Positions 4,081 to 64,000 of a stretch of 64,000 nucleotides of DNA are shown in pieces. The DNA lies in assembly GCA_977017575.1 (NCBI GenBank), contig CDRNVI010000083.1:372001-436000 (forward strand). The letters run 5' to 3'. A program made the position numbers and the translations under genes. Numbering within the stretch: the first letter of the stretch is position 1; each line of letters opens with the position of its first letter. Source of the stretch: Paramoeba atlantica (lineage: Eukaryota > Protista > Discosea). Below the pieces are notes generated by a model. That model did not search any database. It was not told where the DNA came from and was given only the letters and a program-made list of their open reading frames with translations.

Positions 4081-4114
4081 CAACAAGGTACAGAAACTGT
4101 ATCTTTATCGTTAA
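4081..4114 (-). other. Spliced-leader exon sequence at the 5' end of element A1
   Basis: Minus strand TTAACGATAAAGATACAGTTTCTGTACCTTGTTG followed by a U-rich 5' UTR and ATG, with no GT donor. Core CAGTTTCTGTAC and terminal TTG match kinetoplastid SLs. Confidence 0.85.
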
Positions 4115-5001: not shown

Positions 5002-5149
5002 CATTAGCCCTCATGCCATTTTGTATTTGAATAGTCCCTAAGCACATACACATCCGTTAATAACTTTTCTAATGAATTTACGAAATCAATCAATCAGCAG
5101 TCCCAGCCACGTCTATCTGGAATATTTATTTATTTATTTATTTATTTAT

Positions 5150-5174
5150 AACAAAAACAAAGGTCTTAACAAAA
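5150..5174. repeat. Short remnant of the AAAGG(G)TCTT-type repeat
   Basis: aacaaaaacaaaggtcttaacaaaa resembles arrays 58993-59616 and 62787-62844. Joined directly to the 3' end of element C'. Confidence 0.6.
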
Positions 5175-25895: not shown

Positions 25896-25931
25896 CAACA
25901 AGGTACAGAAACTGTATCTTTATCGTTAAAG
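25896..25931 (-). other. Spliced-leader exon sequence (36 nt)
   Basis: Minus strand CTTTAACGATAAAGATACAGTTTCTGTACCTTGTTG, followed by a T-rich UTR and not GT. Confidence 0.87.
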
Positions 25932-30510: not shown

Positions 30511-31539
30511 ATAATAATAATAATAACAAAAGACTATACACATGCAACTTTCAACGTACACTCTCCTTAGCGCACTGAAACATCTATCCACATCACGAAT
30601 AGGCCAAACCGCGGATTATGCGAATGGAGGTAGGAGACCTATCCTCTTTTGCAATTAGGAGAAAACGTGTACAAACGAGCACAAGCAAACCAGAACAATC
30701 TTACAATTAGCCATTTTCAGCTCAATATTTCACCATCGATATTCAACGCGGTACCAAGGGTTAAGCAGTGCGCAAGTTCTTGCCTTCATTGCCGCGTCAT
30801 ATGCCCGAAGAGCAACTCAGCGCCAACTTGTTCTCTGCTTGCCAAATAAACCACCGTATACTATCAATATTACGTACCCCACTCAGTGTTTTCGATGAGT
30901 ACGGATATTTAGCAATGAAATATACATAAATGCTCCAGAATATTATTAACGCGTTGATAAATAAATGTACCAAGAGGACATAACACTCCTGAAAATAAGC
31001 GTTCCAGATTAATGCGCAAAGTTATACACAGCAAATTTCGATTACATATAGCGGCTTTTCTTCACAAAAATGGGGGCATTCGTCAGTCTACCCCGTGATG
31101 TCTTGTACTGAGAAAACGTTACTGGATCCCCGGTATTAGCTTCTGGGTTGAGTGAACGAGCAATCCTGACTGTGCTGCCTTCTTCTGTATTTTTCAGTTT
31201 CCCTTTTTTCATATTCACTTTGTGTGGAGATTTTTCTTGGAGATCATGCTCCCTTTTTTGACCGTGATTAGATTTGTTTCCCTCCCTTTGCGTGTGAATG
31301 ACGCATGAAAAACGACGTGCAGCTGTTCTCTGTGCTTTGCGTGCTATTTCATCAGCTTTTTCATTGAAGGAATTCCCGCAGTGTGCCCGCACTTTAATAA
31401 CGTAGAGACTACTATCTGTACAACGCTCTTTAATTGCTCCTTGTATCTGCGTGAGTAGGTCAGCATTTGGCATGCCACCGTATCCAATGATTGAAAAACG
31501 AACCCTAACATTATGATACCAGTCCCATACATAATGAGA
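30509..31539 (-). mobile_element. APE-2 element 3' part: end of RNase H, 3' UTR, (TTA)6 tail
   Basis: Frame SHYVWDWYHNVR...MPNADLL...KVRAHCGNSFNEKADEIARK continues HTDSHYV at 41279-41300. (taa)n at 30509-30526. Confidence 0.85.
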
Positions 31540-39900: not shown

Positions 39901-41278
39901 GTGCTAAACTTTGGGACAGGTGCACTTTCTATTTCAAAATCCATGCTCCGAAGAATTGACGTTGAAGTTAACAACATGAGAAGAATAGTTTGCCAATGCA
40001 ACAGATTAGATGAATACGGAATGAGCTACCCGAATGCTTCTCTGTATCTTGAAACTGAGCGCTTTTCTACTATACACAAGGTTCAGAGGGCCAAGCTCGT
40101 CGGGCACATGCTGAGGCACTCCAGTGATTTTCAAGAGCTTGTACAGTGGAAACAACGCCCGCATGCACGCAATTTATCTCCAAGCGAGGCTTGCTTCAAG
40201 GATCTTAACATTACACTGGAAGAGGCATTGGTATTTGCGTCAAACCGTGAACACTGGTATCGTCTGACAGAAAAATTGCGACGTGAACTTGAACCGCTCA
40301 TAGAATACGAAAAAATTGGGTCAGCAAAGTGGAAAACTGCTCTTGCCAAAGCTAAAAAACAAAAAAGTCCTTCAGAATTACAGTTCGTTGAAGAATCAAA
40401 TGTGCCTTTTCCAGCCTATAAAGCCATGCAAATATATACCGATGGCTCTGTTCTGCCGATGAAAAATACGAAAGAGATTCGAAGTGGCATAGGTATCGTA
40501 GTTCTAAAACCACGATGCGAACCCTCACGGATATCCATACCATTAGAATCAGACACTATTGAGCGAGTAGAGATCTTAGCTTTTCAGCATGCCCTTCTCC
40601 AACTGCCGTCAAAACCATGCGCTTGTCTATTTCATACAGACTCTTACTATCTATGGGACTTCTTTCACAATCTTCGATATCGGCGGCGAATCGTTGGTTA
40701 CAAGGGGGTTTTAAATGGAGATTTGTTCTCCCAGTTAGACGGAAAATTACGGTCCTTAAAACATGATTTGTACTCAATATATATGTGCAAAGTCAAGGGT
40801 CACTCAGGAAATAAATGGAACGACGAGGCAGATGGGTTAGCACTGATTGCAGCGCGAAAAGTTCCTCGACCGCCTGAGCAGAAAAAGAGAAAAACAAGTA
40901 ATGATTCCAACGCATCACAAATCGACAAATCCTTGGAAAAGCTGATAAAACATAGAACCTTGGAAAAGGGAAAGACGAAAACCAATCCAGCACCCAAGCG
41001 TGGCGCCGAGGCTAAAGTCACGCTGTGCGGGAAGATTGCGAAAACTGGTGGAAAGAGGGCGCCTTCATAGTAAGAGTTGGGCGGAAGATGTGTTTCCACC
41101 AGCAGGTTCGGAATACCCTGAGGAAGAGTTCAGGAAGATAAAGGAAAAGTATTGTGTGAAAGTAAAATAGTAGGCACTATTAAACTCTGAACTGGAAGGC
41201 GAGGGAGTATAAGTTCGGGGGGAAAACATTTAACATTCTAACTGACATATGTCGGTCTTTTGGATTGGATTGGATTGG
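36979..41278 (+). mobile_element. APE-1: full-ORF APE-RT-RNase H non-LTR retrotransposon with (TTGGA)4 tail
   Basis: 1359-aa ORF, ~190-bp 3' UTR, tail ttggattggattggattggat. The 13-bp TSD ATACATAATGAGA (31527-31539 and 41279-41291) encloses both element and array. Confidence 0.93.
36991..41070 (+). CDS. Polyprotein: N-terminal beta-rich domain, AP-like endonuclease, RT, RNase H
   Basis: APE: LNVTTL, LGLQETR, NVYSPT, VLGDFNA, LDHIF. RT: GKTPGSDGI, NWRPI, QYGFRP, IDFAKAFPSV, GILQGDVLAPYLF, YADD. RNase H: IYTDGS, HTDS, KVKGHSGNKWNDEAD. Confidence 0.94.
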   Translation: MADASGARMPTAIMNLLACSKLDRGILFRPAKGGTESAKLRARSLGHIMRLLCLGAKLAVVWRYADSSNYSVWEGVVESWVPSRWRVRYAQCSRFTLPFPPCSPHIVLCAARVCAPKRRRRFKKRSRKYRAQSGKRALRDLVGPGGPAVKRMLSVGTLNVTTLKLKGEDEFSLRKCGHLCEVLAFIGLKGINILGLQETRFRFPSSEKSDVLHRKVQYRNAEFHLNLIPARAKDAYNGMGFVSTFPLSKVSKISERIMSGEFEMEEGVATVINVYSPTRDSKDVEVTEFYGELERCCLRIRESNPRRPLIVLGDFNAPLTHITNKDLDPIAAARLKGLSCSIDCKSAHSLCPSSRKWTCELPNKALRQLDHIFICSRFASAVQRHKVIKAPIPTTHCCVIARIKIKWRVSDPKTNTNQLSWISLRNSEDRKNFINKVHDQYRATSNSCRPWGALAQYMKNAVKTFKKPTKRNLNKEAVKDSKIHDLRGLYHKSRNKKVFNALVKENKEEVEEIISDECLEIEKQLRKNHSNPWRTIRKICGQYRDTFSTNGSSRNDKLNEIRSYFMKFSGADDGDPNLSFELLPPPLVPISDAAFTSEELSTSLEHFRRGKTPGSDGIPMEALQAIAAHPDLRSHLLNIINQVHETGVTEEAWRNTLQIPIPKKGDLTNIENWRPICVVNSVVKLMNHMILSRIRPNIEKSLRGNQYGFRPNRATSGAQIIMNEIKTKAFRGQGLSVAFIDFAKAFPSVSFAAIKASLHAFRVRPCLSKMIMSIYDELKGTVRTSIGITKPFPITTGILQGDVLAPYLFVMVLDRILNKALDGKSDGVLLSSRGTRKRGLHEKRLSDIEYADDIALFSDTKSGLTNMIDNVAEESRKANLKLAVGANKTAWLTFGKSQMSSESLNSKFSGMIPKVTSYKHLGHRQENDFTSTVKDRLKLAWGSLFRMNGIWSSPLSPETKLRLYDSIVYPVLNFGTGALSISKSMLRRIDVEVNNMRRIVCQCNRLDEYGMSYPNASLYLETERFSTIHKVQRAKLVGHMLRHSSDFQELVQWKQRPHARNLSPSEACFKDLNITLEEALVFASNREHWYRLTEKLRRELEPLIEYEKIGSAKWKTALAKAKKQKSPSELQFVEESNVPFPAYKAMQIYTDGSVLPMKNTKEIRSGIGIVVLKPRCEPSRISIPLESDTIERVEILAFQHALLQLPSKPCACLFHTDSYYLWDFFHNLRYRRRIVGYKGVLNGDLFSQLDGKLRSLKHDLYSIYMCKVKGHSGNKWNDEADGLALIAARKVPRPPEQKKRKTSNDSNASQIDKSLEKLIKHRTLEKGKTKTNPAPKRGAEAKVTLCGKIAKTGGKRAPS

Positions 41279-43118
41279 ATACATAATGAGAATCAGTATG
41301 TATAACTGTGTTCCTCGTAGAAGACGAAGCTGCCTGAATGCCTAAAAGAAAGGAGCGAAGTTCAGCCCGATCCGGCGAAGTGCATTCCGGTGGTAAAACG
41401 TGTTGTCTGGTTCTTACACCATTTGAATTAACAATAACTATCCCCGAACCCGCGGCTGGTTTTCCTGCTTCTGAACTGACAGCCCCATCTACGTATATGT
41501 GTTCGGAATCAGCTGAGAGAGGAGAATGGTCCGTGCCTTCTTCAATTCCTTCGAGTACTTTGTAGGTGGTAGTATCTAAGTCCTGGCATACCTTCTTCCA
41601 GGATCTAGAGCCGAAAACCATGTAGGATTTGTGAGATTCAAGATATTCACGCAAAAATTTAACTCTCGACGCCCACCAATCCCGATCTCCCGCTAGGACA
41701 TTGAGATCTTCGACATCTAGTTCCATGTCTTCAGCACATGCCTCTGATAGAGTGGGACGATATTTCTTTCCTGTTGCTTTGCGCCATAGCATTACCGATT
41801 TGAAGGGATTATTGCCGCGGATCAGGTGTCCTAGCATTTGAACTCGGAGGACTCGACATGCGTTAGAAAGTCGCATTCTGTTCCCATATAGTGCATCACA
41901 TGGTGTACCTCTTGTACCATCCCAAGTACGAACCCCGATCGCTAGTCTTCTCATTCGGTTCACTTCACAGTCAATTAAATCAGCGTCTTTTTTTATTAGG
42001 GAAAAGTTTCCACAGCCATACAGCAATAAAGGTGAAACCAGAGATTCGAATAAGTGAAATTTTGTGACAAGCGTGAGGCCTGATTTCCATAATGACTGTA
42101 GGCGATGTGTTGCAGCCCACGCTAAGTTAATTCGGTCTTCAAAGTTTACAATGACACCCTTATTAGTAATTTTCAACCCCAAGTATCGATATTCGGTGAT
42201 TCGAGGCACCAACCCCCCATTCGTTAGAATCAAGTCTCCTTGTGCGTCATTCACTTGACCTACTGTCATCCACGCAGTTTTATTTACACCAATGTTGAGA
42301 CGTAAGTTGACTTTCGCAGCTGTTTGTTCCAGTCTTTCCATAACGCGATTCAAATTAGTAAGAGAGGGACATATGAGCACTAAATCATCCGCGTATGCTA
42401 AATAATTTAGACATTGCGCAGGCTTTCCTTGTCTTTTTGTGCCCGCCCTTCGCAAGATAAGTCCGAACTCATTTTCCTTATACACTTCAGCCATGACTCG
42501 ATCCAGAACCATGAGGAATAGGACAGGGGCCAAAACATCACCTTGAAGTGTGCCACACTGGATCGGAAACGTATCAGTAACTCCGCTTTTGCATCGTACA
42601 ACTGCTTCTGTTTTTTCATACATAGAAATTATCATGCTGCTGAGATGCTGCGGGATGTGAAAGGCTTCCAGTGCAGCACGAATGGAGAAAAAGCTGACTG
42701 AAGGAAATGCCTGACGGAAATCCACGAAGCCTAGCGCAACACCAGGATTCTCACGAGACGCTTTCTGGCACAACTCAATGAGGGTTGCTTGTGCTCCCGT
42801 TGTTGCTCTATTGGGTCGGAATCCGTATTGACAATCACTTAATTGAGCATCCACTGTAGGAAGAATTCGATTTAGTATCATACGGTTCATGAGTTTTGCA
42901 GCGTGCACTATTAGACATATTGGTCTCCAATTGTTCATGTTGCCTAAGTCGCCTTTTTTCGGAACTGGGACTTGGATAACTCGTTTCCATGTCTGTGGCG
43001 CTCTTCCGCTCTCACGAACCATATTAATTAAATGTAGAAGAATAGATTGTATGAACGGATCGCTGTTCAGTACTCGTAAGGCTTCAATTGGAATCGAGTC
43101 AATGCCTGGTGCTTTACC
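41279..43118 (-). mobile_element. APE-2 central part (RT and start of RNase H)
   Basis: GKAPGIDSIP, NWRPI, VDFRQAFPSV, GTLQGDVLAPVLF, YADD, IYVDGA, HTDSHYV. Confidence 0.9.
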
Positions 43119-45776: not shown

Positions 45777-48046
45777 TGGCTCGTCGTCTATGAGAAGTCT
45801 AACGATGCTGTCGGTCGTACCTGTAGGCCCAGGGCTCACACCTTTTGCCAGTCGTCTACTTGCACATCTTAATTCTTGTACGGCTATTCCTGCGATAATC
45901 GGTGCATCTTCCGGAACTTTGAAATTGCAGTTTTGTTCTGGATGAAGTGCACGTAGTTTTTGGACTTTTTCTTGATCAGTCAACGTGCTCTTCTGAAAAG
46001 AACAGTCCAAAATCCTTGAAGCCTTCGATGTACAGTTTTCTAGCACCAAACGAGTGGCCCGTTTGATTGCTCGCTTGTCCTCATGAAAAAACTCGTCTTC
46101 TGGTTGATTGTGTTCAACTGTCTCTTGTTGTATGGGTCTTCGCCGCCGTTGTCTACTATTGGCTTGACGCACAGAAGCTAATGAAAGTTTCATTGCAGAC
46201 AAAACTTTATTCCAAATTTGATTTCTTTGTACGTAGTCGCTTTCTGCATAGATGTGCATGATGTCCCTGTATATGGCAATCACACTGGAGATAAAATCAG
46301 GACTAATGGTTTTCGCGGTTGGAATTGGGAGATGGTCTACGTCTGCAGCTCCTGTGTCCAGCTTAAGCGCTCTGGCCTTTTTAACATGTGTTTCTTCGCG
46401 GGTCTCAATAGGAAGGTTCTCGTCAATGGCTGGAGGAGCTCTGTACCAACGGATCTGATATACACGGATATTTTCTTGCGGAGGAAGAAAACCTGGAAAA
46501 CTTTCTTCTGCACGATGGCCGAACAGACCTTTATAGCTCAAATGTAGTTTCGACGCCCCGGTCCGATTCGCGGATCGTGTTACGGTTCCTTCGGAGATGT
46601 TCAAGGCGGTTTGTTTATCGAATGTCCACGCCACTGTGCATTTGGTTCCTTTTTTTATTGAAGAACAAGACTTCTGTATGCGCTCGAAAGGAATGGGGAA
46701 TTCGGTGTCTGGATTTATCGATTTTATGATGCCACCGATGTGGTTGTCTTGTTCCGGATTTCCTTCGCTATAAAGTATGCTGATGACTTGATTTGTTGTT
46801 TCGGTTGGTTTGTCCTTTTCTTGTGTGTCTGGCGTGATGCAGTCGTAGAACTCGGTGTTACTTCCATACTCCTTGGTTTTGGGGCCCGGAGTCGTGCTAA
46901 TTACCTGTATTTCGCTCGATGTGTCAGGTCGGAAACCTTCGTCGCCGTTGGGCGCAATTTCGCCGTACTGAATCGGTTCGTTGTTTTGTACGCGTCCGTT
47001 TTCCTGGACGTTCTTTGTACTCTTGTTGTGCTCGTTTTCCTTTTGGATGATAGCATCCTGCAGAACTTTAGCCTTCTTACGGTAACTGTCCATGGCAACG
47101 GCCGACGGATTTAACGGTCGTAAAACGAGTTCATCCAGAGTAGTGGGATCTTTTGGTGGAGGGGTGGCCGCCTGAGCGTACGTTGGTTCCTTTCTCCAGT
47201 TCGTAAATGCTGTGTTCCGAGCGGTGTTCGTTCTTATTTTGATGCATCCTTCTGGGTGACGAATGGTTGGGCTCTCGTCTTGCGACACTTTGTCAGCTCT
47301 TGTCTGAAGAAGGTTGAGTTGTTTGTTTCGCCGATTGAAGAAATTTGAAGACAGCAGTGCGTTCTTAATTGTGACTTTGCAGTCACTTTTCGGCAGTGGG
47401 GTCGGCGATCGACGCATCGACGGAGGAGGAGATTGTGGACACTCAGATGGCGTTGATGGTGGTGATGGCGGCGGTAGTGGCGGCGGAAGTGGCGGTGAAG
47501 TAAGTGACCGCGATGCGGCGGGGACGGGCGATGGAAGAGACGGAGTTTCAGTGGACAAAGTCGTGGGTGGTGAGGGCGGCGGGGGCGGCGGGGGCGGCGA
47601 AGGAGAAGCGCTCGGTTCGGACGGAGCCTCAGGCGGTTTCTCCTCAATTGTTTTCTTCCTGCGACGGGTCGGAGGTAGAGGCTGTACGACGGGAGCTACT
47701 CCCGTTTCTTTCGCCCGGCTCCGCGTGAACATGCCCATGAAAGTGAGAAAGTAATAGAAAATAAATCAACTCAAATCAAATCAACTTCCAATGACCGATC
47801 CACACAAATTGTGCAAATAAATCAACTTCCAATGACCGATCCACACAAATTGTGCAACAACTCCATGGATTTCGTCGAACAATTCCCACGTTGACGTGTC
47901 CGAAGGCACTCTACTTCCTCGAAATCCTCCACGCACTCCGATCGTCGCTTGCGGCGCCCCAGCGCCCAGGTACATAAAAGTGTAGGTTGTCAGAATAAGA
48001 AAAAGAAAATCAACAAGGTACAGAAACTGTATCTTTATCGTTAAAG
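45777..48046 (-). mobile_element. Family B copy 2, 5' part with SL, ~270-nt 5' UTR and Pro-rich N-terminus (ATG 47738)
   Basis: SL 48011-48046, ORF MGMFTRS...PPPPPP...LLIDDEP, near-identical to B1 over the shared region. ~40-bp tandem duplication in the 5' UTR (~47778-47857). Confidence 0.92.
48011..48046 (-). other. Spliced-leader exon sequence (36 nt)
   Basis: Identical to the copy at 25896-25931 and followed by attttcttttt. Confidence 0.87.
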
Positions 48047-50760
48047 AGCAACAGTACATCAGAACTGTACTTTAGCAACAGTACATCAGAACTTAATCCG
48101 ACGTCAGAGCTCAGTTAGAAAATCCCGCAAGAACTGGATGGAGGAAGATGACTCAAAACTGAGCGAGCATGACCGCTTAGAATTAGACATGGACCGCCGT
48201 TCTATTAGCAACGCTTTGCAAGCGGGACGAGCAGGAAATCTAAGCAAAGCAACGCGAATACTAGACAACGTGTATCGAGATTCACCTCTCACGGCAGAAG
48301 AAAAAGCTCAGACACTAAAATCACTTCACCCAAACGGACCCTCACCTCAAGGGACGGACCAAGAGCTACCGAGAATTGCAGTGGTCGAATGCTCCGAATT
48401 GCGCCTAGCGACAGCAAAATTATCCCGAGGTGCATCGCCCGGACCCACTGGTTTTAGCGAATGTATGATGCGGCTCTTAGCAGAAGACGAAGAATCATGC
48501 CTCGCCTTGTGTCATATGTTCCGCGACGTCATCAACGGGGAAATCGCTCACAGTGTACGCAAACGTCTGACTCGTTGCAGAATCATTGCTCTAGCCAAAC
48601 CGAACAACGGCGTAAGACTTGTAGCGATGGGGGATACCATAATTAAAATATGTGGCACAATTCTTCTTCAGCGTCATGAGGCTGCGCTAAAATCGCTCTT
48701 CCAACCTATCCAGCGAGGGATCTTGCAGAAGAATACCTGTGAATCAATTGTACACGAGTTACTTTCTGAGTATGAAGCTGGAAATACGGTGCTCACCATT
48801 GACTTCAAAAACGCGTATAATACACCTCATCGAACAGCAATAGAAAGAGCTCTAACTCAATATCCCATCTTCAAACATTTCATGCGGATTTTTTATTTGG
48901 AATATGGCCAGCCAACCGAACTTCTCTTCTTTGCTAACAACTCGCTGCATTCAGTCATAGAGAGCTCCTCTGGGGTTCGGCAAGGATCCGCGCTGTCATC
49001 GCTTTATTTCTGCGCTGTGTTGCATGGAGCTTTGAAAGAAGTAGCTGATGCTTACCCCGAGGTCACCGTAAGCGCGTACCAGGATGATGTAACGATGAGT
49101 TCTAAAAACGAGGCATCTCTCGAGGTTGCATTCTTGCATTTCAAAGAGCTTACGAGCGATCTGAACTTAGAAATAAATTACCGCAAATGCGAAATTTTTC
49201 AAGGATCCAGGGCATTACACATCAAAGATTCCTCTCTTCGGGAACTTGGGGTTCAAGACTGCGTAGATACAATCAAAGTGCTCGGAGGATACCTAGGCAA
49301 CAACAAAGCCGTAGAACGCAAACTTCTCGAAAAATTGGAGAAGCATAACTGTCTGTTTCGAAGACTCAGCCGCATGGGGCCAAGTAATCTTTCCCTCGCA
49401 ATTTTAAAGCGTTGCACGATACCGCGCCACGATTATCACCTGCGAGTACATAAACCGGGCGCATCACTCCTTCTAGCTCAGACTTTTGACAAAGAGATCT
49501 AACAAGTCTTAAGAAAGTGGTGCGATGCTGACGAAGATGCCTTAGCACTTGCCTCTTTGCCGTGCAAAATGGGAGGATTGGGAATAACCTCCACAGTTCT
49601 GAAACATCGCTATCTTTTTGAAGCTTCCCGTCAATCTATTGATGAGCATTTCAACCCATATGAAGCTCCGATAGAAAACCCTGAGAAGCAACAAAAAGGC
49701 AACAAGACCACAGGGACACAAGGAGTACGCACGGCACTGAAGAAACTAGTCAATGACGAGCACGAAAAACTTGCGGCAGAGCTGAAAACAAAACCACGTT
49801 TCAGTGGAGTTATGAAGCGCTCGAAGGAAGCAAATTTTCATCTCCTCTCGACCAACAACTACGTAAACCCGTACCTCTTCCAGCAAACGCTCAAGATGAG
49901 GCTGGCCGTCAGTCTCCCTTCTTCGAGTAATATCTCCTGTCCTGGATGCGGGGTCAGTGAATCGCCCTCCGGAATATTTCCACACGTTGCAGGTTGCTCG
50001 AAATGTGCTGGGATGAACTGTACGAGAAAACACTCACACATTGTTCGATACCTTTCAAATCTATGTGGAAAAGCTGGACTCCCATGTGCGTTGGAACCGC
50101 GTCTGTATTCATCGTTCTTTTGCACGAAGTGTAAGTGCTCTATTTCACCAGAAGCAGCGGAGAGACACCCATGCAGAGCTCGTCGTATACGTTCGGGCCC
50201 CGATCTGGCCATAATGTGGCCAGATATTGGAGAAGTCCTCTACGATGTCACAGTCGTACACACACTCTGCAGCAGCTACCAGAAACAGTCCAGCAAAGCC
50301 CTTCTAGAGAGTGCCATAGAAAGAAAACATCGAAAATACATAGTGGAGAAAGGAGTGGATCCAAACTATTTTCGATGCATAGCGCTAACTGATTGTGGAA
50401 TGCTGCACGAAAATACGAAGGAGCTGATTAAAGCCCTCTCGAAACGCGCTGACTTAGACCCCAAAGTGATACGGGAAGCCTTCCAATTGGAAAACGAAAA
50501 GTTCGCAGCATACACAATCGTGTCGCAGCTGCGAAATCACATCAAGGGCGAAAAGTGGCTAGGAGGCCTCAGACTCTGAATGTAGTCGGTTTTCGCGACT
50601 CTCCGACAGCACTCCCATCTTATGCCTTTTACTTTACGACCTGTGCCTCCGAAATGTGGTCGTTACGGTAGTTGATCGTGCCGACAGTGCTTACTCTCAC
50701 GCCTTGCTCTTTCGAGTGAGGTTCCCCAACGTGAGGTAGGTAGGATCAGGTTTTTTTTTC
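48047..50760 (+). pseudogene. 5'-truncated family A' CRE-like element with one in-frame TAA (49500-49502)
   Basis: ORFs 48138-49502 and 49557-50579 share a frame and align colinearly with A1 (IDFKNAYN, GVRQGSALS, AYQDD, LPCKMGGLG, GPDLAIMW). Confidence 0.9.
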
Positions 50761-50828: not shown

Positions 50829-51044
50829 CAAACTCGTATAACTTCAATGTGATATAAGCCCCTCGGCTAAATTTCCATGCGTAGACTTCTAGATTTTAAC
50901 CCATCTAACCTAAATTTATTCATTACTAACAAAGGAAAAACCACTTAGAAAGCGAGAGCCATCTCACTCTCATCAGAAATAAAAAATAAAAAAAAGTTCC
51001 TCCTGTTAGCGAGTAGTTCTTCCTGTTAGCGAGCGCGCTAACCC

Positions 51045-54263: not shown

Positions 54264-54299
54264 CTTTAACGATAAAGATACAGTTTCTGTACCTTGTTG
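54264..54299 (+). other. Spliced-leader exon sequence (36 nt)
   Basis: CTTTAACGATAAAGATACAGTTTCTGTACCTTGTTG directly after the D3 poly(A), followed by aattatttt and ATG at 54346. Confidence 0.87.
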
Positions 54300-54345
54300 A
54301 ATTATTTTCCTTATTTCACTTTTCTCCAGGTACGCGGTTCCTTCT

Positions 54346-57300
54346 ATGACCAGCCAGAAAAACCTGGGTCTCACGTTGTCACACGACGAACGTTTCGATG
54401 AAGAAGCGCTACCCATGGAATATTACTCCTTTGCCCAGGAAGAGAAATCTCATAACGCTGGAGACTGGGACCAATTCGCCGGGAACGCGCATTTGATTTC
54501 TGGCAGAAGCACGTATAATGAACTCCTTTACACCACCCCTATTCCCGAGAATGTGCCCGAATACTGGACAAGACGAGCTATCATGATAGACGGAGAGAAA
54601 CCCACGCCAGACACGGGGAAGGTAACAGACAATGAGGAGACAAATCACTCCCTCGTCATACGAACAAACATGACACAGCCTCAAGCGAATCCTGACACCA
54701 ACGCTTCACCTGCAACCAAGACTCCGAAACGCAAAACACCGAATTCCACTCCACAATACACCATACAACGTGAATGCCCAGCGGCAGGTTGCACCTGGAA
54801 GACTCCCCCACACGGAGGGCAATGGCAAGCGTTCTACAATCATGTAGCTCACCGACATGGTAAAAATATTTCGACTGATTGGTGGGAAAAGGAAGGTAGA
54901 TTCCTTTGCAAGGATTGCATCCGGCATTACGACAAAAGCAAACAGATCTCTCACCTTAAGCACTGTAAAGGACGAAACCAACCCGTTCGATCACTAACGC
55001 CGCCCATGCCGACGTCTTTTTCGGAGAAAATAAATGAAGAGCATCCAGCTGATCCACTTCCACTTCTTAGCTCAGTTTGTTCACTTCCTTTAAGCACCTG
55101 TAAGGACGTCCCCCATTGCTGCAGATTCTTGTGGGCCAGAATTTTGAGTGAAGCATTAACATCCGCTGTCAAAGAAAACACAGTGCAGGCCTGGACCCTC
55201 CTCGCGATGCTTCCGAAGTGCGTTCTCCCGGCCCCTTACCGTGGCGGTCGTAAAGGGCACACATCGTACTCCACATACGTGGAAAAACGCATGGAGCTCT
55301 GGCTCGGTGGAGACTACCTTCTCCTCTGGGACCAAGCCCTGAAGGATGGCGAGAGAAAACGCTTGAAGTCCAGGAACCCAGAAAGTGACGAAGATAGAGC
55401 GGCAATAAGAGCAGAGCTCTTGGTGCGTCAGGGGGAATTCTCTAGAGGAATGGCCGCCCTATCTGCAGCTCCCATGGCCCCGGACAACGAGGAGACCCTT
55501 GCCAAGCTGTTGGAAAAACACCCAGAGCCCCACGAAAATCCCCTCGAGGAAGATCTACCGCCGATTAAGGGTGCCCCTCTACAGTTGCAAGAAGCAGAGG
55601 TCAGGAATGCGGTTCAAAGCTTTCACAGGGGGTCTTCCGCCGGTACAATGGGCCTCCGTCCTGAGCATCTCCAGTCGGCTATTTTGGAACACGAGGACAA
55701 AAACGTAAGTCCTCTCTCAGCTCTCACACGCCTCGTGAACCACTTACTCGAGGGAAAGGCGCCGCCTGAAGTTCAGCAGTCCTATGCAGGAGCTAGACTT
55801 TGCGCTCTGGAGAAAGGCGAAGACGACGTACGGCCCATTGCGGCGGGCGAAACCCTAAGGCGCCTAGTAAGCAAGGCAGCATGCCGCGCCGTAAAGGAGA
55901 AGGCGGGAACGTTATTCCGTGGACGCCAATACGGTGTTGCCGCATCTGCGGGGTCCGAACGAGTGATTTATCTCTGTCGGAAAACTATGCTCAACAACAT
56001 GGGGAGCGACAAGCTGGTTTTCTGCAAGGTTGATCTGCGAAACGCTTTTAACAACGTCAGCAGACCCGTCTTCGCTCTTCTCACGCGCCTACATTTTCCG
56101 GAACTTTCGCCCTGGGTAGAATGGTGCTACTCAAGTCCGAGTTGCCTCACGTATGGAAACAATTTCATCCCTTCAGCCGAAGGCGTGCAACAAGGTGATC
56201 CTTTAGGCCCACTTTTATTCTCTCTAGTGCTTTCTGAGGTGACGGAAGAGATAGCATCCCGATCAAACCTTGACTCGCAACTGTGGTACCTCGACGATGG
56301 GGTTCTTATGGGAGAGGCTGTGGAGGTCAGAAAGGCGGTGGACGTTTTTTCGGAAGTTGGCCCCCGGTGCGGACTTTTCTTGAATCCTGCGAAAAGTGAA
56401 ATCATAACGCCACCTGCCTCGGCTCATCTCACAACGCTTTTTCCCGAGATCCCAAAGGCGAAAATCCGGCACGACGGGAACTTCGATATCCTTGGGAGCC
56501 CGATCGGGTCGGACGAGCACTGCGCGGAGTTCCTGATGCAGCACGCCATCGACCCAGCACGTGAGACCCTAGCCGCCATAGGTTTAATAGGAGACCCCCA
56601 AGTGGCCAGTGCTCTAATCCGTCAATGCACGGGGTTCTGTCAGATGGTATACGCCCTCCGAACTACACCCCCACAGGCCCTTACCCATCTTTGCTTTTTA
56701 CTAGACGACTCTGTCATGACGGCTGTAGAGTGGGCACTTTTTCCCCTGGACCCCCCCGCACGTGATCAAATACTACGCAGGAAGCGCCACGGAGGCTTCG
56801 GTCTCAGATCGTCGACACTGCACGCAACGGCGGGATACGTTTCATCTGTCGCTCATGCCGCCGACATGGACGACTGGGGCCCCTTGGAAGCTCAAGGATT
56901 TACTACCTCCGTGCAAGACGTAAACGATAAAGCAGGCGCAGCGCTTGTGGACCCATGCACAGGACGCACTCCCAAACAAAACAATCCTCGCACAGATTCT
57001 GATCTACGTCATAGCTTGTCCTCGCAAACAAAACGCCCTCGGCGGACGCAGAATAAAAAGGGATCAGAGAAGACGGCCGAACCGGAGATGATTATCCCTA
57101 GACAGCAACAGCTCAGCCAAGTCATTTCCCAGCAAGAATTTAACACTGCATACGAGAAGGCTGACCCCCGCACACGTGCAAGATGGATATCAGAGTCCGG
57201 AAAAGGTGCCGGGAGCTGGGCTTTCGTGACTCCTTCGCGGACCAAGGGATACGCTTTCACTCCCACAGAGTTCCGTACCTTATCCCGCTGGTGGTTGGGC

Positions 57301-57948
57301 ATGGATGTCTATCCAGAGGATCGACCTTGTCCAGCAAAAGGATGTGACTTACCACTCCTAAAAAATGGGGAACACGCTCTGATGTGTAAGAACGGGCACG
57401 GCCTCATCACCCGCCACAATGCGGTCTGCCAACAGTTCACCTCCTTCTGCAGCAAGGCCAATATGGCTCCGCAAAGGGAAAAAAGTCTCGGAAATCGGGG
57501 ACCTGGAGGAGGTCTCACCAGACCAGGCGATGTTTTTCTTCCCAACTATGAACTGGGAGGTGGCATGGTTCTAGACTTCGCAGTCACCCACGCACAGCAA
57601 TTGAAGTATTTGGACTCAGTCCGTAATGCTAGCTGGGTGGCTGCGGGGTCTTTTGCTGAACACTTCTCTGAAACGAAAGGGAAGCAGCGCCAGGAAGCGG
57701 AAGCAGCTCAGTTACTGTTCACAGCGATGATTGTTGAGTCCTTCGGCTCATGGAGCAGAAGTGCCTTGACGGTCCTGTGGAAGGTGGGAGCGTTACGTGC
57801 CAACGCGTCGAACGGTCTTTTAACAGACACTCAGGCACGAAACATCCTTTTGAAAGAGCTTAATGTCACGTTGATGCGTTCCCAGGCTCGGATGATGGTC
57901 TCCAGGATAGTTGTCAGTGACCCTAACGCCCCCCTTGAAGGCGCTTAG
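54346..57948 (+). CDS. Zinc-finger-RT-RLE polyprotein (family D4)
   Basis: CPAAGC...HVAHRH, FLCKDC...HLKHC, VRPIAAGE, VDLRNAFN, GVQQGDPLGPLLF, WYLDD, CPAKGC...HALMC...HN, RPGDVFL, LDFAV, ESFGSW. Confidence 0.93.
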   Translation: MTSQKNLGLTLSHDERFDEEALPMEYYSFAQEEKSHNAGDWDQFAGNAHLISGRSTYNELLYTTPIPENVPEYWTRRAIMIDGEKPTPDTGKVTDNEETNHSLVIRTNMTQPQANPDTNASPATKTPKRKTPNSTPQYTIQRECPAAGCTWKTPPHGGQWQAFYNHVAHRHGKNISTDWWEKEGRFLCKDCIRHYDKSKQISHLKHCKGRNQPVRSLTPPMPTSFSEKINEEHPADPLPLLSSVCSLPLSTCKDVPHCCRFLWARILSEALTSAVKENTVQAWTLLAMLPKCVLPAPYRGGRKGHTSYSTYVEKRMELWLGGDYLLLWDQALKDGERKRLKSRNPESDEDRAAIRAELLVRQGEFSRGMAALSAAPMAPDNEETLAKLLEKHPEPHENPLEEDLPPIKGAPLQLQEAEVRNAVQSFHRGSSAGTMGLRPEHLQSAILEHEDKNVSPLSALTRLVNHLLEGKAPPEVQQSYAGARLCALEKGEDDVRPIAAGETLRRLVSKAACRAVKEKAGTLFRGRQYGVAASAGSERVIYLCRKTMLNNMGSDKLVFCKVDLRNAFNNVSRPVFALLTRLHFPELSPWVEWCYSSPSCLTYGNNFIPSAEGVQQGDPLGPLLFSLVLSEVTEEIASRSNLDSQLWYLDDGVLMGEAVEVRKAVDVFSEVGPRCGLFLNPAKSEIITPPASAHLTTLFPEIPKAKIRHDGNFDILGSPIGSDEHCAEFLMQHAIDPARETLAAIGLIGDPQVASALIRQCTGFCQMVYALRTTPPQALTHLCFLLDDSVMTAVEWALFPLDPPARDQILRRKRHGGFGLRSSTLHATAGYVSSVAHAADMDDWGPLEAQGFTTSVQDVNDKAGAALVDPCTGRTPKQNNPRTDSDLRHSLSSQTKRPRRTQNKKGSEKTAEPEMIIPRQQQLSQVISQQEFNTAYEKADPRTRARWISESGKGAGSWAFVTPSRTKGYAFTPTEFRTLSRWWLGMDVYPEDRPCPAKGCDLPLLKNGEHALMCKNGHGLITRHNAVCQQFTSFCSKANMAPQREKSLGNRGPGGGLTRPGDVFLPNYELGGGMVLDFAVTHAQQLKYLDSVRNASWVAAGSFAEHFSETKGKQRQEAEAAQLLFTAMIVESFGSWSRSALTVLWKVGALRANASNGLLTDTQARNILLKELNVTLMRSQARMMVSRIVVSDPNAPLEGA

Positions 57949-58992
57949 GGGCATGGCGAAGACGCCATGCGCAGGGCCACATTCCTCTGGCCCGGATGCT
58001 GGTCGAGTCGACAGAGTCTATGCTCACGCCTAGTCCGTCAGGTCTAGGTACCCCAAGTGAGGTAGTACACGGGTAGTGAATCTCCTCCCCGTCGGCCAGC
58101 ATCCTGTTTCTCGACCGTGTCGCTGTCGACACAGGCCCGCGCCTGCGCCCTCCCGTATAACAAGGGAAGGGTCCACAAGTCAGGCCGTGGAGAGGTCGAA
58201 AGACCCGGTCCGGAACGCGCGAATGGTTGAGGAGCCGCCTGCAGGCCGGGTGAGGCGAAGCTGAGGGAGACTTTACCCCCCCTGAAAAGTTGAAAAGTTG
58301 GGTAGGGGAAAGCAGGAAAGTAGGGAGTAAGGTGGGAAAAGTATGCCAAGAGGTGAGAAAGAGGAGAAAGAGAGAGAAAAATTTTCTTTATTTGCATAAA
58401 AACAATATAAAATTGCTAAAAGAAATCCACACCGAGGGGCCGCGCAGGACATAAAAGAAAATAACTATAAAGATGAAATAATAATTTATTTTCACATGAG
58501 TTCACCTATTCATATCATATACATGAAAAGCAAATTGAAACGTATGTAGCTTCTACATCATCTTGACAAAATAGGCCTTTCAAAACAAACAATATAAATT
58601 TATAATATATCACTATGTTAGCGGGTTGCACCCGCCAAACCCGGCGGCTACCTGCCCCTAAGATTCCACAACGGCTACCTACCCCTAAAAGATTCTACAA
58701 GTAAGTAATCAGTAAATATGTAAATTTTCAGAATACATATTGTAGTTTTTATACATGATTCAATTACAACCCCCTTTCGGGGAAAAGAACAGTGAAAATT
58801 ATAACCCCCTTCCGGGGCATTTGACCCGATATTAGCCCCTCGGTTAAATTTCCATGCGTAGACTTCTATTAGTTCCGCGCGGTTGGACTGAAAGGTTAAA
58901 TGTTCAGGAGAAAATTGTAAATCCTTTAACTGGGCAAATTCTCCCAGTGTTGGTTGGTTGGTTGGTTGGTTTCCAACTGGCAAACGACGCGA

Positions 58993-59616
58993 ACCTTTCT
59001 TTTGTTAAGACCCTTTCTTTTGTTAAGACCCTTTCTTTTGTTAAGACCCTTTCTTTTGTTAAGACCCTTTCTTTTGTTAAGACCCTTTCTTTTGTTAAGA
59101 CCCTTTCTTTTGTTAAGACCCTTTCTTTTGTTAAGACCCTTTCTTTTGTTAAGACCCTTTCTTTTGTTAAGACCCTTTCTTTTGTTAAGACCCTTTCTTT
59201 TGTTAAGACCCTTTCTTTTGTTAAGACCCTTTCTTTTGTTAAGACCCTTTCTTTTGTTAACACCCTTTCTTTTGTTAAGACCCTTTCTTTTGTTAAGACC
59301 CTTTCTTTTGTTAAGACCCTTTCTTTTGTTAACACCCTTTCTTTTGTTAAGACCCTTTCTTTTGTTAACACCCTTTCTTTTGTTAAGACCCTTTCTTTTG
59401 TTAAGACCCTTTCTTTTGTTGAGACCCTTTCTTTTGTTAAGACCCTTTCTTTTGTTAAGACCCTTTCTTTTGTTAAGACCCTTTCTTTTGTTAAGACCCT
59501 TTCTTTTGTTAACACCCTTTCTTTTGTTAAGACCCTTTCTTTTGTTAACACCCTTTCTTTTGTTAAGACCCTTTCTTTTGTTAAGACCCTTTCTTTTGTT
59601 AAGACCCTTTCTTTTG
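58993..59616. repeat. Tandem array of 18-bp AAGACCCTTTCTTTTGTT, ~34 units
   Basis: Directly visible, with a recurrent variant AACACCC. Ends in an inverted copy of the unit. Confidence 0.98.
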
Positions 59617-59635
59617 AAAGGGTCTTAGCAAAAGC

Positions 59636-59658
59636 CAACAAGGTACAACAAGGTACAG
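59636..59658 (-). other. 3' part of spliced leader with a 10-nt stutter, joined to one repeat unit
   Basis: Minus strand CTGTACCTTGTTG-TACCTTGTTG-GCTTTTGCTAAGACCCTTTC. Confidence 0.7.
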
Positions 59659-60150
59659 TCTTCATATCACACATATTCATCATTTTGCACGTGCCTCCTT
59701 CTAAAAAAAAGCAAACCTTCTTTCTAAAACAAAGCAACTTCAAAACATTGCCTTTCCCTCATCCTCCGCTGCTAGATAGCGGTGTAATTGGGATAACAGA
59801 GTTGAACCGTTCAATTCTTGAAGCAAAAGAGCAAAATCCTCTAAAATGGACTGTCTGGAGAGTTGACAACGATCTACTAGAGCACCTAGAAGGTTCTTTG
59901 TGTTACTATGCAACGCTCCTCCGGACAATAAAGCCAGGCACTGGAATTTCTCTTTGGCTATCAACCCTGACGAAACGTAACGCTCAAGTTTTTTGTTGGT
60001 CGCTTCCCTCATCATTTTGCACGGTTGTTTGTTCACGTGTGCCTGAGACAATTCCTGGATCACAGTCAAATCGTAGAACACTGTGCCGTCCGCCCAATAA
60101 ACTGCTAGATCCGGCCCTGATCGGTGGATGTTACCATGGCAGCTGCGCTG
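59659..60150 (-). mobile_element. Family F element, 3' part (RLE + UTR)
   Basis: QRSCHGNIHRSGPDLAVYW...YDLTV. Continues 61431-62786 across the 16-bp TSD CATGGCAGCTGCGCTG (60135-60150 and 61431-61446). Confidence 0.87.
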
Positions 60151-60169
60151 CGTCAGAGCATTCGACTTT

Positions 60170-60396
60170 TGTACCAACGGATCTGATATACACGGATATT
60201 TTCTTGCGGAGGAAGAAAACCTGGAAAACTTTCTTCTGCACGATGGCCGAACAGACCTTTATAGCTCAAATGTAGTTTCGACGCCCCGGTCCGATTCGCG
60301 GATCGTGTTACGGTTCCTTCGGAGATGTTCAAGGCGGTTTGTTTATCGAATGTCCACGCCACTGTGCATTTGGTTCCTTTTTTTATTGAAGAACAA
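60170..60396 (-). mobile_element. Internal family B fragment (beta-rich N-terminal domain)
   Basis: Matches 10866-11090 (CSSIKKGTKCTVAW...VYQIRWY). Confidence 0.9.
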
Positions 60397-60946
60397 TTTT
60401 TTTTTTCTTTCTTGTTGTAGTATACAATGGCAGTATACAATGTTGCTGTATACTCAAAATAATAGTTTCACGTGTTTTCCGTTCCTTTATTTATTCACAT
60501 GTTACTCAAAAAAGCAAAACAGTAATAGCCGAATGCTGAAAGCAGCGAAAAAGTGACGACTCAAAGCAGCGAAACGGTGATAACCCAAAGCAGCGAAACA
60601 GTAACAACCAAGAGCTGAAAGCTGCGGAACAATAATCACCAAGCAGCAAAACAAAAATAACCTAAGGCTGAAACCTAACCAAGCAGCGAAACAGTAATCA
60701 CCAAAGGCTGAAAGCAACGAAACATTATTAATCACCAAAGGCTGAAAGCAACGAAACATTATTAACGAAATGTTAAAAGCAGCGAAAATGTAATATTCAG
60801 AGGAGTGTTTAAAGACGGAGTCCTCCTACCCATTTCTCGGTTTCTATATATTGGCGCAATTGAGAGACGACTGCATAGGCTGAATATTTTTCCAGTTCAA
60901 GTTGAAAAGCTTCTCGTACAATCTTGTAATCAACATCAACTTTTGT
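60397..60946 (-). mobile_element. Family A'' 3' end: last ~45 codons and 3' UTR with degenerate TTTCGCTGCTTT repeats
   Basis: Minus strand DVDYKIVREAFQLELEKYSAYAVVSQLRQYIETEKWVGGLRL stop, homologous to the A and A' C-termini. aaagcagcgaaa-like motif repeated ~8 times. Confidence 0.82.
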
Positions 60947-61433
60947 CGAATGATGGGGCGTAGCGACCCCAGCTTCCCTAGCTAACTCACCCGGCGTCGC
61001 ACAACAAGACGCTACATACCTAGGGTGGGTACGATCAAGGTCCCGCGGATGACACTACCCGGTGCCAACAAAACAAGGCACAAAATAACTAGGGTAACGG
61101 TCACCCAGACATCGCAGCGTGAGAATGACACCGCCCGGTACCGGATATAACAAGGTACTAAGAAACTAGGGTGGGTGTCATTCAGCATAATCTTTGGAGT
61201 GTGTTGTGTTTTTCACTTCAAAAGAAGTGTTTTTTCATAAAGAATATTTTCTTGTAGTATATAAAAGGGGATAAAAAAAAGATAAGCTGGCTGCTCGCGC
61301 TCGATCTGGTCAGATCTTCGGATTTGACTTGCGTGCTGCGTGGCACAGCTCCTAGCAAGCGATAAGGGGAGGCTTGTTCTAGGGAGGTAACATCTCCTCG
61401 GAGATATATTGCCTAATTCATCATCATCATCAT
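60945..61433 (+). mobile_element. Second variant of the structured (CAT)5-tailed element
   Basis: The 5' ~250 nt is clearly homologous to the reverse complement of 15580-15830. The 3' part differs and is hairpin-rich (gtcagatc-ttcg-gatttgac). (CAT)5 at 61419-61433. Confidence 0.83.
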
Positions 61434-62786
61434 GGCAGCTGCGCTGGTGTTCTAAGCGCGTTTCCTCTGTTACCGCTGACTGGCAGCTAGCGCACACAAG
61501 GGTGGCAAATTCCCTTGGCTCTTTCTCACAAACCAGACCGCTTTTCAGGCACAAATCGTGAATATAACGGACTAAGGCATTGTGCTTGGTAGTTGCGTTC
61601 ACGCCAGAGCACTTCACGCATCCCGGAATGTGATTCAATGCAGTAACCGATGTTAAAGTGCACTTGCAACCAGGACAAAGTAAATCATTTGGAAGTCGAG
61701 GGTGTTTAAGCGCAAAACGTGGCATTATCGCCAATTTGAATTTGGAACTCGGAACCAGACGCACTTTAGAGGTAATCCAGGAAAATTGCCACTTTTGAGA
61801 TGAAAGCATAATGATGGGAGCGAGGCTTTTATCTTTCAGCAACTCTTCACGGACCCCATTGTGATATTTCTCTTCTGTCACGAACTCATCATTAGGTGGA
61901 TTAATGTCGCAATTATCACTTCCAAGAGGGACCGGAGCGTTCCGTATTTGTGTAGCCCGAGCTGAAGAAGCTTTTCTGTGCTCCAGAGCTGCACTGCGGG
62001 ACGCGTCATAAGAGGCTCCTCTCAACGGTTCCATGGGAGTGATGCCTAAGCCACCTTTGCGAATTGGAAGACGGATCCATGAAATTTGAGTATCTGTCAG
62101 TTGGCCAAACCAGTTTTTGAGGACATCATCTACGCTTGCATCGAACTCCTGTGCCAAATTCAGTGTCGTTTCAGGATCGTGCACTCTAATGTGATAGCGG
62201 TGTCTGACGTTTATGCACTTCGATAGTAATAAGGTAGAAACATTGTTTATGCCCATTTTCTTGAGCCGACGAAATGCAGATTGATGTTTGCTTAATTTCC
62301 CACATAGCTGCTTGTCCACGTGCTGCGTACTACCAATAAAAGCACCAAGCACTTTGGTTGATTCTGAATCTGATTTCACTCCTGCTGAGTCAAGTCTTGC
62401 CGGGATGGGTAATTGCCGTTGTCCCCCAAACCACGCACACTTATGTAATGCCACTTGCAAATTTTGTGTCAGTAGAAGACCCCGCAAACGTTCGAAGGCT
62501 AAGAGGTCCCCATCTCTGGACGCCATGTTGATATCGTCGACAAATGCAAATATCTGCACCCCTGGAAATTCCTCTGCAAGTGTTTCTAGAATCGGTTGCA
62601 ACATGGCGCAGAAATAAAGGGTTGAAAGTGGCGATCCTTGCCGCACCCCCGCCGAGCTTTGAATGGTGCCTGCGAACTTGCCATCTGCCCCGTAAAATAG
62701 CAGTTCAGACGGTTCTGCGTATTCCGCAGTGAAAATGCGTCGGAAAGGACGGAGCGTGGACATTCCAAAAACGCATTTCGCTATCT
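61431..62786 (-). mobile_element. Family F element, 5'-truncated RT/CCHC part
   Basis: GVRQGSPLS, AFVDD, LPIRKGGLG, CPGC...HIPGC..C...HN. Confidence 0.9.
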
Positions 62787-62844
62787 CAAAAAAAACAAAG
62801 GTCTTCAAAAAAACAAAGGTCTTCAAAAAAAAAACAAAGGTCTT
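62787..62844. repeat. Three units of C-A(7-10)-CAAAGGTCTT
   Basis: Directly visible at the truncated 5' end of F. Related to the 58993-59616 unit. Confidence 0.85.
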
Positions 62845-62854
62845 AAATAAGGAA

Positions 62855-64000
62855 TTTTTTTTTTTTTTTTTTTTTTAGTCGATCAATGATTTAGTCTTTT
62901 TTTTTACGACTTTAACGTCTTGTTGTAGTATACAATGGCAGTATACAATGTTGCTGTATACTCAAAATAATAGTTTCACGTGTTTTCCGTTCCTTTATTT
63001 ATTCACATGTTACTCAAAAAAGCAAAACAGTAATAGCCGAATGCTGAAAGCAGCGAAAAAGTGACGACTCAAAGCAGCGAAACGGTGATAACCCAAAGCA
63101 GCGAAACAGTAACAACCAAGAGCTGAAAGCTGCGGAACAATAATCACCAAGCAGCAAAACAAAAATAACCAAAGGCTGAAACCTACCCAAGCAGCGAAAC
63201 AGTAATCACCAAAGGCTGAAAGCAACGAAACATTATTAATCACCAAAGGCTGAAAGCAACGAAACATTATTAACGAAATGTTAAAAGCAGCGAAAATGTA
63301 ATATTCAGAGGAGTGTTTAAAGACGGAGTCCTCCTACCCATTTCTCGGTTTCTATATATTGGCGCAATTGAGAGACGACTGCATAGGCTGAATATTTTTC
63401 CAGTTCAAGTTGAAAAGCTTCTCGTACAATCTTGTAATCAACATCAACTTTTGTCGAATGATGGGGCGTAGCGACCCCAGCTTCCCTAGCTAACTCACCC
63501 GGCGTCGCACAACAAGACGCTACATACCTAGGGTGGGTACGATCAAGGTCCCGCGGATGACACTACCCGGTGCCAACAAAACAAGGCACAAAATAACTAG
63601 GGTAACGGTCACCCAGACATCGCAGCGTGAGAATGACACCGCCCGGTACCGGATATAACAAGGTACTAAGAAACTAGGGTGGGTGTCATTCAGCATAATC
63701 TTTGGAGTGTGTTGTGTTTTTCACTTCAAAAGAAGTGTTTTTTCATAAAGAATATTTTCTTGTAGTATATAAAAGGGGATAAAAAAAAGATAAGCTGGCT
63801 GCTCGCGCTCGATCTGGTCAGATCTTCGGATTTGACTTGCGTGCTGCGTGGCACAGCTCCTAGCAAGCGATAAGGGGAGGCTTGTTCTAGGGAGGTAACA
63901 TCTCCTCGGAGATATATTGCCTAATTCATCATCATCATCATGGCAGCTGCGCTGGTGTTCTAAGCGCGTTTCCTCTGTTACCGCTGACTGGCAGCTAGCG
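62855..64000 (-). mobile_element. Near-identical second copy of the F::(CAT)n element::A'' chimera, with longer 3' UTR and poly(A)
   Basis: 62919-64000 repeats 60411-~61492 with a few SNPs/indels, including both internal junctions. T-run 62855-62876. Confidence 0.9.

Follow-up and report, generated by a model that had tools for sequence, protein, structure and literature searches.

Within a 64,000-nt stretch of genomic DNA (hereafter the window), the 3' end of a spliced leader (SL) is joined directly to one unit of an 18-nt repeat, and this unit stands inverted beside a long array of the same repeat. The locus raises the question of how these pieces came together, and whether an SL next to a repeat unit marks the RNA template from which such arrays were made. 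The organism is a kinetoplastid, and the initial annotation drew on the telomerase RNA of trypanosomes to propose that a cDNA had run through a U-rich repeat template into the SL. The premise of that comparison, that kinetoplastid telomerase RNA is trans-spliced, is correct (PMC4229120, PMC8643685), and the direct contact between SL sequence and a single unit is likewise borne out by the minus-strand sequence from 59658 to 59616.

Structure of the joint

Read along the minus strand over these positions, the last 13 nt of the SL are followed by a 10-nt SL relic and then by a 20-nt copy of the 18-nt unit. The array and the features of the joint, in plus-strand order, are the following.

58994..59616, plus strand: 34.6 copies of the 18-nt repeat AAGACCCTTTCTTTTGTT (TRF: period 18, 98% matches)
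59612..59615: TTTT on the plus strand, AAAA on the minus strand; fold-back loop, possibly poly(A)/T-run microhomology
59616..59635, minus strand: GCTTTTGCTAAGACCCTTTC, single inverted unit, U-rich when read along the chain, differing from the array consensus at one position
59636..59645, minus strand: TACCTTGTTG, SL relic, repeating the final 10 nt of the SL
59646..59658, minus strand: CTGTACCTTGTTG, 5'-truncated SL, its last 13 nt, with the exact SL 3' end at the splice-donor position

The 19-mer that had first been recognised as an inverted, one-mismatch copy of the array unit consists of the 18-nt unit and one overlapping base. The inverted unit differs from the array consensus at a single base, GCTAAG vs GTTAAG. 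In the array itself, GTTAAG is found in 28 units, GTTAAC in five, GTTGAG in one and GCTAAG in none. The inverted unit is also the sole copy on the strand opposite to the array, against a chance expectation of 0.01. Since the AAGACCCTTTCTTTTGTT array is T-rich on the plus strand, it is A-rich in the sense of the minus-strand chain. The SL identity of the 13-mer and relic is beyond chance, as the window contains 11 SL-like matches at up to two mismatches, compared with 1.47 expected.

Together with the first array units, the inverted unit can form a hairpin of 19 bp with one mismatch and an A4 loop (-19.3 kcal/mol, z -4.65). Such a near-perfect 19-bp palindrome at the end of an array could be the product of a DNA-level rearrangement or an assembly artefact, and no short-read contig independently spans the hairpin joint at 59617-59646. 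This origin is nevertheless highly improbable. The arms are only 19 bp long and their flanks are unrelated, unlike those of fold-back read artefacts or inverted duplications. A contig from run X1 agrees with the window down to 59647, and a similar joint of T-rich unit and A-rich array is present on another contig of the genome. The contigs were taken from three runs of unknown kind (X1-X3); from the run labelled RNA (X5), nothing was placed on the joint stretch. In three runs, the depth of words of the unit was roughly 200-2000 times that of flanking sequence, varying by run.

Searches with the joint and its surroundings returned no relatives. A gathering-threshold Rfam scan of the window found no family, and protein searches with the 145-aa ORF of the neighbouring element fragment N and with the ORF spanning UTR, SL, unit and array gave no matches. 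The literature held no match for the SL or unit sequences, a metagenome scan for the SL-unit joint found none, and an exact look-up of three window ORFs in public assemblies returned no record.

Spliced leader sequences in the genome

Four full SL cDNA copies are found in the window, each heading a reverse transcriptase (RT) element and each without the first two or three SL bases. Four additional loci of the same genome (L001-L004; ENA assembly ERZ24900291) were read, and 17 SL sites were located in 147 kb. At seven of the 17, the SL is 5'-truncated to 10-28 nt and has unrelated sequence before it. An SL RNA gene is present on metagenome contig Ga0316204_10168667, 1-100 (L005). Its exon, AACTTTAACGATAAAGATACAGTTTCTGTACCTTGTTG, is identical to the window SL, its intron starts with GTATGAGAAGC, which is of the kinetoplastid type (GTATGAG), and the gene adjoins tRNA-like sequence. 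This contig also puts the host or a close relative in a public metagenome.

The exon in L005 ends in CTGTACCTTGTTG and continues as GTATGAGAAGCTTCG, while at the joint the 13-mer continues from 59645 as TACCTTGTTGGCTTTTGC. Because the same exon runs into a GTATGAG intron in L005, the unit is not SL intron, and the reservation attached to the initial annotation, that the sequence could be the intron of the SL RNA gene, is removed. The 13-mer has the form of an SL-capped cDNA 5' end: it stops at the donor position, is joined to non-SL sequence and is preceded by unrelated sequence.

The same combination of SL and relic is found elsewhere. At 7487-7528 in L001, a full SL is followed by the same 10-nt relic and then by the 5' UTR of an element, and the 23-mer of SL and TACCTTGTTG at the joint is identical to the one heading this UTR. 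Stacks of SL and partial SL are present in L001, L003 and L004; in L003 and L004 the SL is followed by relic-like pieces of 8-10 nt.

Stacks of relict SLs are reportedly also found in dinoflagellate genes, where Slamovits and Keeling are said to have attributed them in 2008 to the recycling of processed cDNAs. As in those genes, retro-copied RNAs here carry at their 5' end a full or partial SL and, after it, an older, truncated one. The dinoflagellate relics, however, start after an AG inside the SL, which reflects re-splicing, whereas the 10-nt relic at the joint follows TG. The AGs of the present SL would leave relics of 16 or 22 nt. The start after TG sets the relic apart from the re-spliced, dinoflagellate type, and slippage or repeated jumps fit it better.

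Several other arrangements are present near SL copies. In L003, at 9846-9930, a stack of partial SLs, some without the SL 3' end, is interleaved with ACGAGACG repeats before an element ORF, and looks like RT stuttering between SL and 5' UTR. In the window, at 48047-48100 on the minus strand, a 20-nt unit, AGTTCTGATGTACTGTTGCT, is repeated two to three times directly upstream of a full SL copy. This tandem repeat, short and placed at a 5' joint, stands outside the T-rich unit family. Between an RT ORF and an SL copy (minus strand, 25896-25930), positions 24119-25827 contain 11 copies of a 153-nt tandem repeat, each corresponding to 51 aa.

The chain of element pieces around the joint

Upstream of the 13-mer, where more of the SL had been assumed in the initial annotation, lies the 81-nt 3' UTR of N, a CRE-like element fragment. 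The element pieces on both sides of the joint are the following.

54264..58405, plus strand: P3, a complete SL-headed RT element (RVT_1), with its SL copy at 54264-54299 and its ORF at 54346-57948
58406..58420: 15-nt filler separating the 3' ends of P3 and W
58421..58993, minus strand: W, the 5'-truncated 3' end of another retroelement (573 nt; 92-99% to L001 17519-18206), the 3'-most chain piece seen
59659..59739, minus strand: 3' UTR of N, 81 nt
59740..60169, minus strand: C-terminal PD...D domain (putative restriction-like endonuclease type) of N, CRE-like and 5'-truncated, with the stop codon at 59742-59740
60170..60396, minus strand: 227-nt fragment of a B-type RT ORF (100% identity), abruptly joined to N at 60170
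60410..62785, minus strand: M, a 5'-truncated RT element; a second M copy is at 62918-64000
62786-62844: three AAGACCTTTG(T)n units and poly(A)-tailed scraps before M

In minus sense, the order of the chain is M, an A-run, the 227-nt RT fragment, N (511 nt in total), the SL 13-mer, the relic, the unit, A4, the array and W. The chain abuts the 3' end of P3 tail to tail, and it runs past 64000. The ORF of N has 145 aa (60177-59740). Its C-terminal PD...D domain, recognised by eye and by paralogy only, has ten paralogues in the window at 32-55% identity, each ending an RT ORF or a truncated fragment. With Pfam, RVT_1 was the only match on the RT ORFs of the window, and a PDB search gave weak RT matches only. 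The 3' UTR of N has no relatives in the window or in L001-L004.

The 227-nt segment is 100% identical at three places, 60170-60396, 10864-11090 and 46442-46668, the last two being internal in B-type RT ORFs. Its source lies about 2.3 kb from the homologous C-terminal region of its own family; at 60170 it runs, out of context, straight into the C-terminal domain of another family. Both 60170 and 60396 are branch points in short-read contigs.

All pieces of the chain are co-oriented, their 3' ends are natural and their 5' ends are truncated at arbitrary points. Three W copies stop at the same base (...GTGTGGATTTCT) and then diverge. As W and M each end at the same base in independent copies, natural RNA 3' ends have been preserved. 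The array was also considered as a 3' tail of P3, and this was ruled out. The P3 3' UTR, which is collinear with L001 up to the poly(A) point of L001, ends in ...GCATAAAAACAA at 58405, and 58421-58993 is W, in the opposite sense. A 41-nt 3' UTR module (...CCATGCGTAGACTTCTA on the plus strand) occurs at 58828-58868, at 50851-50891 and in L002 at about 13076-13114, and is common to element 3' regions that are otherwise unrelated.

The 13-mer, relic and unit are contiguous with the UTR of N, and could be the 3' terminus of the N family itself, acquired through an ancestry in SL genes (CRE/SLACS-like) or as a T-rich motif for the RT. The contrasting account would have N end in ...GATATGAAGA(C) without SL, the SL piece being separate. 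A weak likeness to the SL further upstream (AA.GAT.AA ... GATA) agrees with a terminus belonging to N, as does the closing of other CRE-like 3' UTRs by T-rich TTAAGAC units. Against it, a contig from X3 matches the window over 59658-60061 and departs from it where the 13-mer starts; its remaining 104 nt, on the left, disagree with the window, which places a segment boundary there. None of the six nucleotides immediately before the 13-mer agrees with the SL, the flank of an SL gene would run on into GTATGAG, and SL sequence is found in none of ten paralogous CRE-like 3' UTRs. In addition, the 23-mer is identical to a recent leader of SL and relic at a true 5' end in L001. A comparable layout is seen in L003 at 13300-13460, where a CRE ORF stop is followed by UTR, a truncated SL, a relic-like 9-mer and the next element. 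Such a 3' terminus of the N family is improbable. The 13-mer, relic and unit are probably not UTR of N, and would be either cDNA of the 5' end of another RNA or short jumps onto the SL. The truncated SLs at other cDNA 5' ends, the identical 23-mer in L001 and the X3 boundary make plausible an RNA in which SL sequence would be followed at once by the unit as the start of the body. Within the 147 kb examined, the start of the unit was nowhere found in an AG acceptor context.

Retrotransposons specific to SL genes, CRE1/CRE2, SLACS and CZAR, are known from trypanosomatids. The Diplonema genome paper also lists SLACS-like RTs (PMC10161547). The present elements resemble this group in that SL sequence adjoins the element, and they may also share an RT ORF that lacks an AP endonuclease and ends in a conserved PD...D domain. 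In contrast, the SL piece here has no SL intron, the elements lie outside SL RNA genes, and the SL copies stand at 5' ends as cDNA of trans-spliced RNA. Neither SL intron nor SL gene flank was found beside elements in the window, and with no intron flank present, the arrangement is not that of a CRE/SLACS element inserted in SL genes.

Another parallel is found in template-jump chimeric retrocopies. The U6/L1 chimeras of humans are retrocopies of this kind, made by template jumping of a non-LTR RT. Like these, the pieces here share one orientation, start at arbitrary 5' points and keep natural RNA 3' ends, and small abundant RNAs have been captured between element copies. The pieces here differ in being only 10, 13 and 20 nt long and in including SL fragments and 18-nt satellite units, and the chains are long, with arrays in both polarities. 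The site is read as a chimeric retrocopy joint of a known kind, with unusually short SL and satellite pieces.

With a probability of about one half, the 62-nt stretch (59597-59658) represents several template-switch joints clustered within a minus-sense chain of pieces that were retro-copied from RNA, a chain that abuts P3 tail to tail. R2-type RTs are documented to jump serially from the end of one template to the end of the next (PMC8594491, PMC8857657), and we infer that the joints of this chain were made in the same manner. Since a non-LTR RT copies from the 3'-most piece upstream, W would have been copied first. The RT would then have switched to an A-rich repeat transcript, or the array may already have been present as the target and primed the copying. 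The next switch would have been to a short RNA, probably trans-spliced, with a U-rich unit at the start of its body and SL sequence at its 5' end. A stall and slippage within the SL would have left 13 nt plus the 10-nt duplicate, bounded by TG...TG, before the RT jumped to the 3' end of N, then to a B-type RNA and then to M. The terminal T-run of the nascent array strand could have paired with a short A-tail of the unit RNA, and such pairing would account for the A4 loop and the fold-back appearance. As a counterpoint, the nascent T-rich strand would be complementary to the U-rich acceptor only through this assumed A-tail. Twin priming was ruled out, as it gives head-to-head joints and those seen here are tail to tail. 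Snap-back of the T-rich strand on itself was also ruled out, the strand being without self-complementarity.

Two independent insertions meeting tail to tail would give a similar picture. A satellite array that was already in place, T-rich on the plus strand, would have been nicked in its T-run and would have primed reverse transcription of an RNA ending in ...GCUAAGACCCUUUC-An, either a read-through transcript of N or an SL-unit RNA, and the unit shared by both sides would follow from the abundance of the satellite or its transcript. The CTTTT|G junction fits microhomology between poly(A) and a T-run, and the great, run-dependent depth of unit words noted above agrees with such abundance. CRE-like 3' UTRs closed by T-rich TTAAGAC units, singly or in pairs, some with poly(A) and some without it, are known from L003 and after F2, and P3 and W also meet tail to tail. 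On the other hand, the array should resume past the other side of the insert, beyond the window, and the identity of unit type on the two sides must be put down to coincidence. A search across the window for the duplicated target AAGGGTCTTAG matched only the array itself. Two separate insertions are rather unlikely.

Repeat arrays and the question of a template

The unit at the joint belongs to a family of related T-rich units of 17-19 nt in the window and the other loci. The family includes AAGACCCTTTCTTTTGTT, AAGACCTTTG(T)n, ATTACCCCCTTTTTGTTT and AGATCAAGTTTTTTGTA, and others in L002 and L004. Three sets of observations concern how these units are placed.

First, arrays can be laid down together with an insertion. 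At 31525-41291 in the window, a 12-bp target-site duplication, TACATAATGAGA, encloses both a 5.4-kb array and an AP-endonuclease/RT/RNase H element (ORF 36991-41070), which has a (TTGGA)n tail and the array, of 17-nt units, on its 5' side. The inclusion of array and element within one 12-bp duplication is the basis for this statement. A second copy of the same element family, in L003, carries ten units of an 18-nt variant (array 6440-6619).

Second, some arrays begin with a constant leader. A 16-nt leader, GGCATGAGGGCTAATG, precedes ATTACCCCCTTTTTGTTT-type units at 5002-5017 and at 85-100, both on the minus strand, with unrelated sequence upstream. The leader of these ATTACCCCC arrays is not SL and is the same at two independent joints, with 49 and 1.6 units. 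From these sequences, the shared leader suggests a discrete RNA 5' end for the ATTACCCCCTTTTTGTTT-type repeat.

Third, units close element 3' ends. T-rich TTAAGAC units stand after several CRE-like 3' UTRs, as after F2 at 5150-5177 on the minus strand and before poly(A) in L003. The unit after the F2 3' UTR has the same phase as the joint unit, within 1 nt. A 'GC' leader shared by N and F2 was considered and is weakened, since GGGCT is UTR in the B/F2 family and only the phase of the unit start is shared. In two cases in L004, A-rich arrays follow CRE-like UTRs; in one case there, a single T-rich unit of a different type, followed by A-rich units, lies downstream of a CRE-like UTR. An A-rich 18-nt unit, CATAAAAAGAAAGGTTCT, whose complement resembles the AAGACCCTTTCTTTTGTT unit, closes an F1-type 3' UTR with 1.5 copies at 7005-7032 on the minus strand, and occurs 2.3 times at 14990-15030 in L004.

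Repeats at LINE 3' tails, as in eel UnaL2 and the Drosophila I factor, are made by RT slippage at initiation. The likeness lies in short units akin to the element 3' end being reiterated at the insertion joint, as with the TTAAGAC units that close several CRE-like 3' UTRs here. The units here are longer, however, at 17-18 nt, and the arrays reach 319 copies and also stand at 5' joints inside a target-site duplication.

With these arrays in view, the template proposal of the initial annotation can be considered. It called for a dedicated SL-capped RNA with a U-rich unit immediately after the SL, which an RT would have copied repeatedly into the AAAGGGTCTT arrays, and it took the joint as the best candidate for that template. 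The SL does directly abut one unit, and kinetoplastid telomerase RNAs offer a precedent (PMC4229120, PMC8643685) in that they are SL-headed, non-coding and carry a tandem-repeat template. Also in its favour are the 5.4-kb array and its element within a 12-bp target-site duplication, the discrete leader shared by the ATTACCCCC arrays, and the homogeneity of each array in one element family, whose unit is 17 nt long at one locus and 18 nt at another. The present unit differs from the telomerase RNA precedent in being 18 nt long and U-rich, its arrays are internal and of both polarities, and no link to TERT was seen.

Several features of the locus stand against a dedicated template. The SL is followed by a single unit, and the neighbouring array shares the strand of this unit in the manner of a fold-back, where a product would lie opposite its template; a cDNA running through a repeat into the SL is thus not what the sequence records. 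No array unit has the complement of the C of the unit, and the C variant itself occurs in no array unit. Polarity is not constant within chains, as T-rich arrays in chain sense (at 4113, 6842, 14120, 31537 and 62786) are found as well as A-rich ones (at 58994, at 16077 and 14990 in L004, and 1.5 units at about 7005-7032). The other known leader is not SL, and the SL at the joint is present as 13 + 10 nt only. In addition, the pattern of variant units (18/20 and 28/30) points to duplication of blocks or to copying of a long array, not to unit-by-unit synthesis. Templating in cis of A-rich arrays by an adjacent inverted unit was also examined and is no general rule, fitting one of four A-rich arrays. 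On sequence grounds, a dedicated template RNA behind the arrays is improbable. What survives of the proposal is that an RNA headed by the unit is plausible; its role as a template is unsupported, given the fold-back, the C variant, the polarity and the leader. The joint is at most a sign that some RNA begins with a repeat unit, and the link to a reiteratively copied, telomerase-like template is conjecture. The piece formed by SL and unit is better understood as a passenger, derived from the 5' end of a trans-spliced transcript that contains repeats, than as the machine behind the arrays.

A broader form of the idea may be stated for the genome as a whole. A family of short U-rich RNAs (SL-GC-UUUUGYUAAGACCCUUUC, and another starting with GGCAUGAGGGCUAAUG) might be copied reiteratively by retrotransposon RTs at insertion joints, at this site by copy-back on the unit, to give satellites of 17-18 bp. 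This would amount to a telomerase-like activity at internal sites, and it is a speculative suggestion with a small chance of being right.

Taken alone, the site is nothing unusual in this genome. Should the SL-unit RNA be no more than a passenger, as in the template-switch reading, the joint is one more trace of very jump-prone reverse transcription in a kinetoplastid genome rich in SL-headed retroelements, a result that is useful for decoding such chains and unsurprising. The wider pattern is that of homogeneous 17-18-bp arrays with discrete leaders, co-inserted with elements inside a target-site duplication. This pattern bears on the birth of satellites, and on whether retroelement RTs act in a telomerase-like manner away from chromosome ends.
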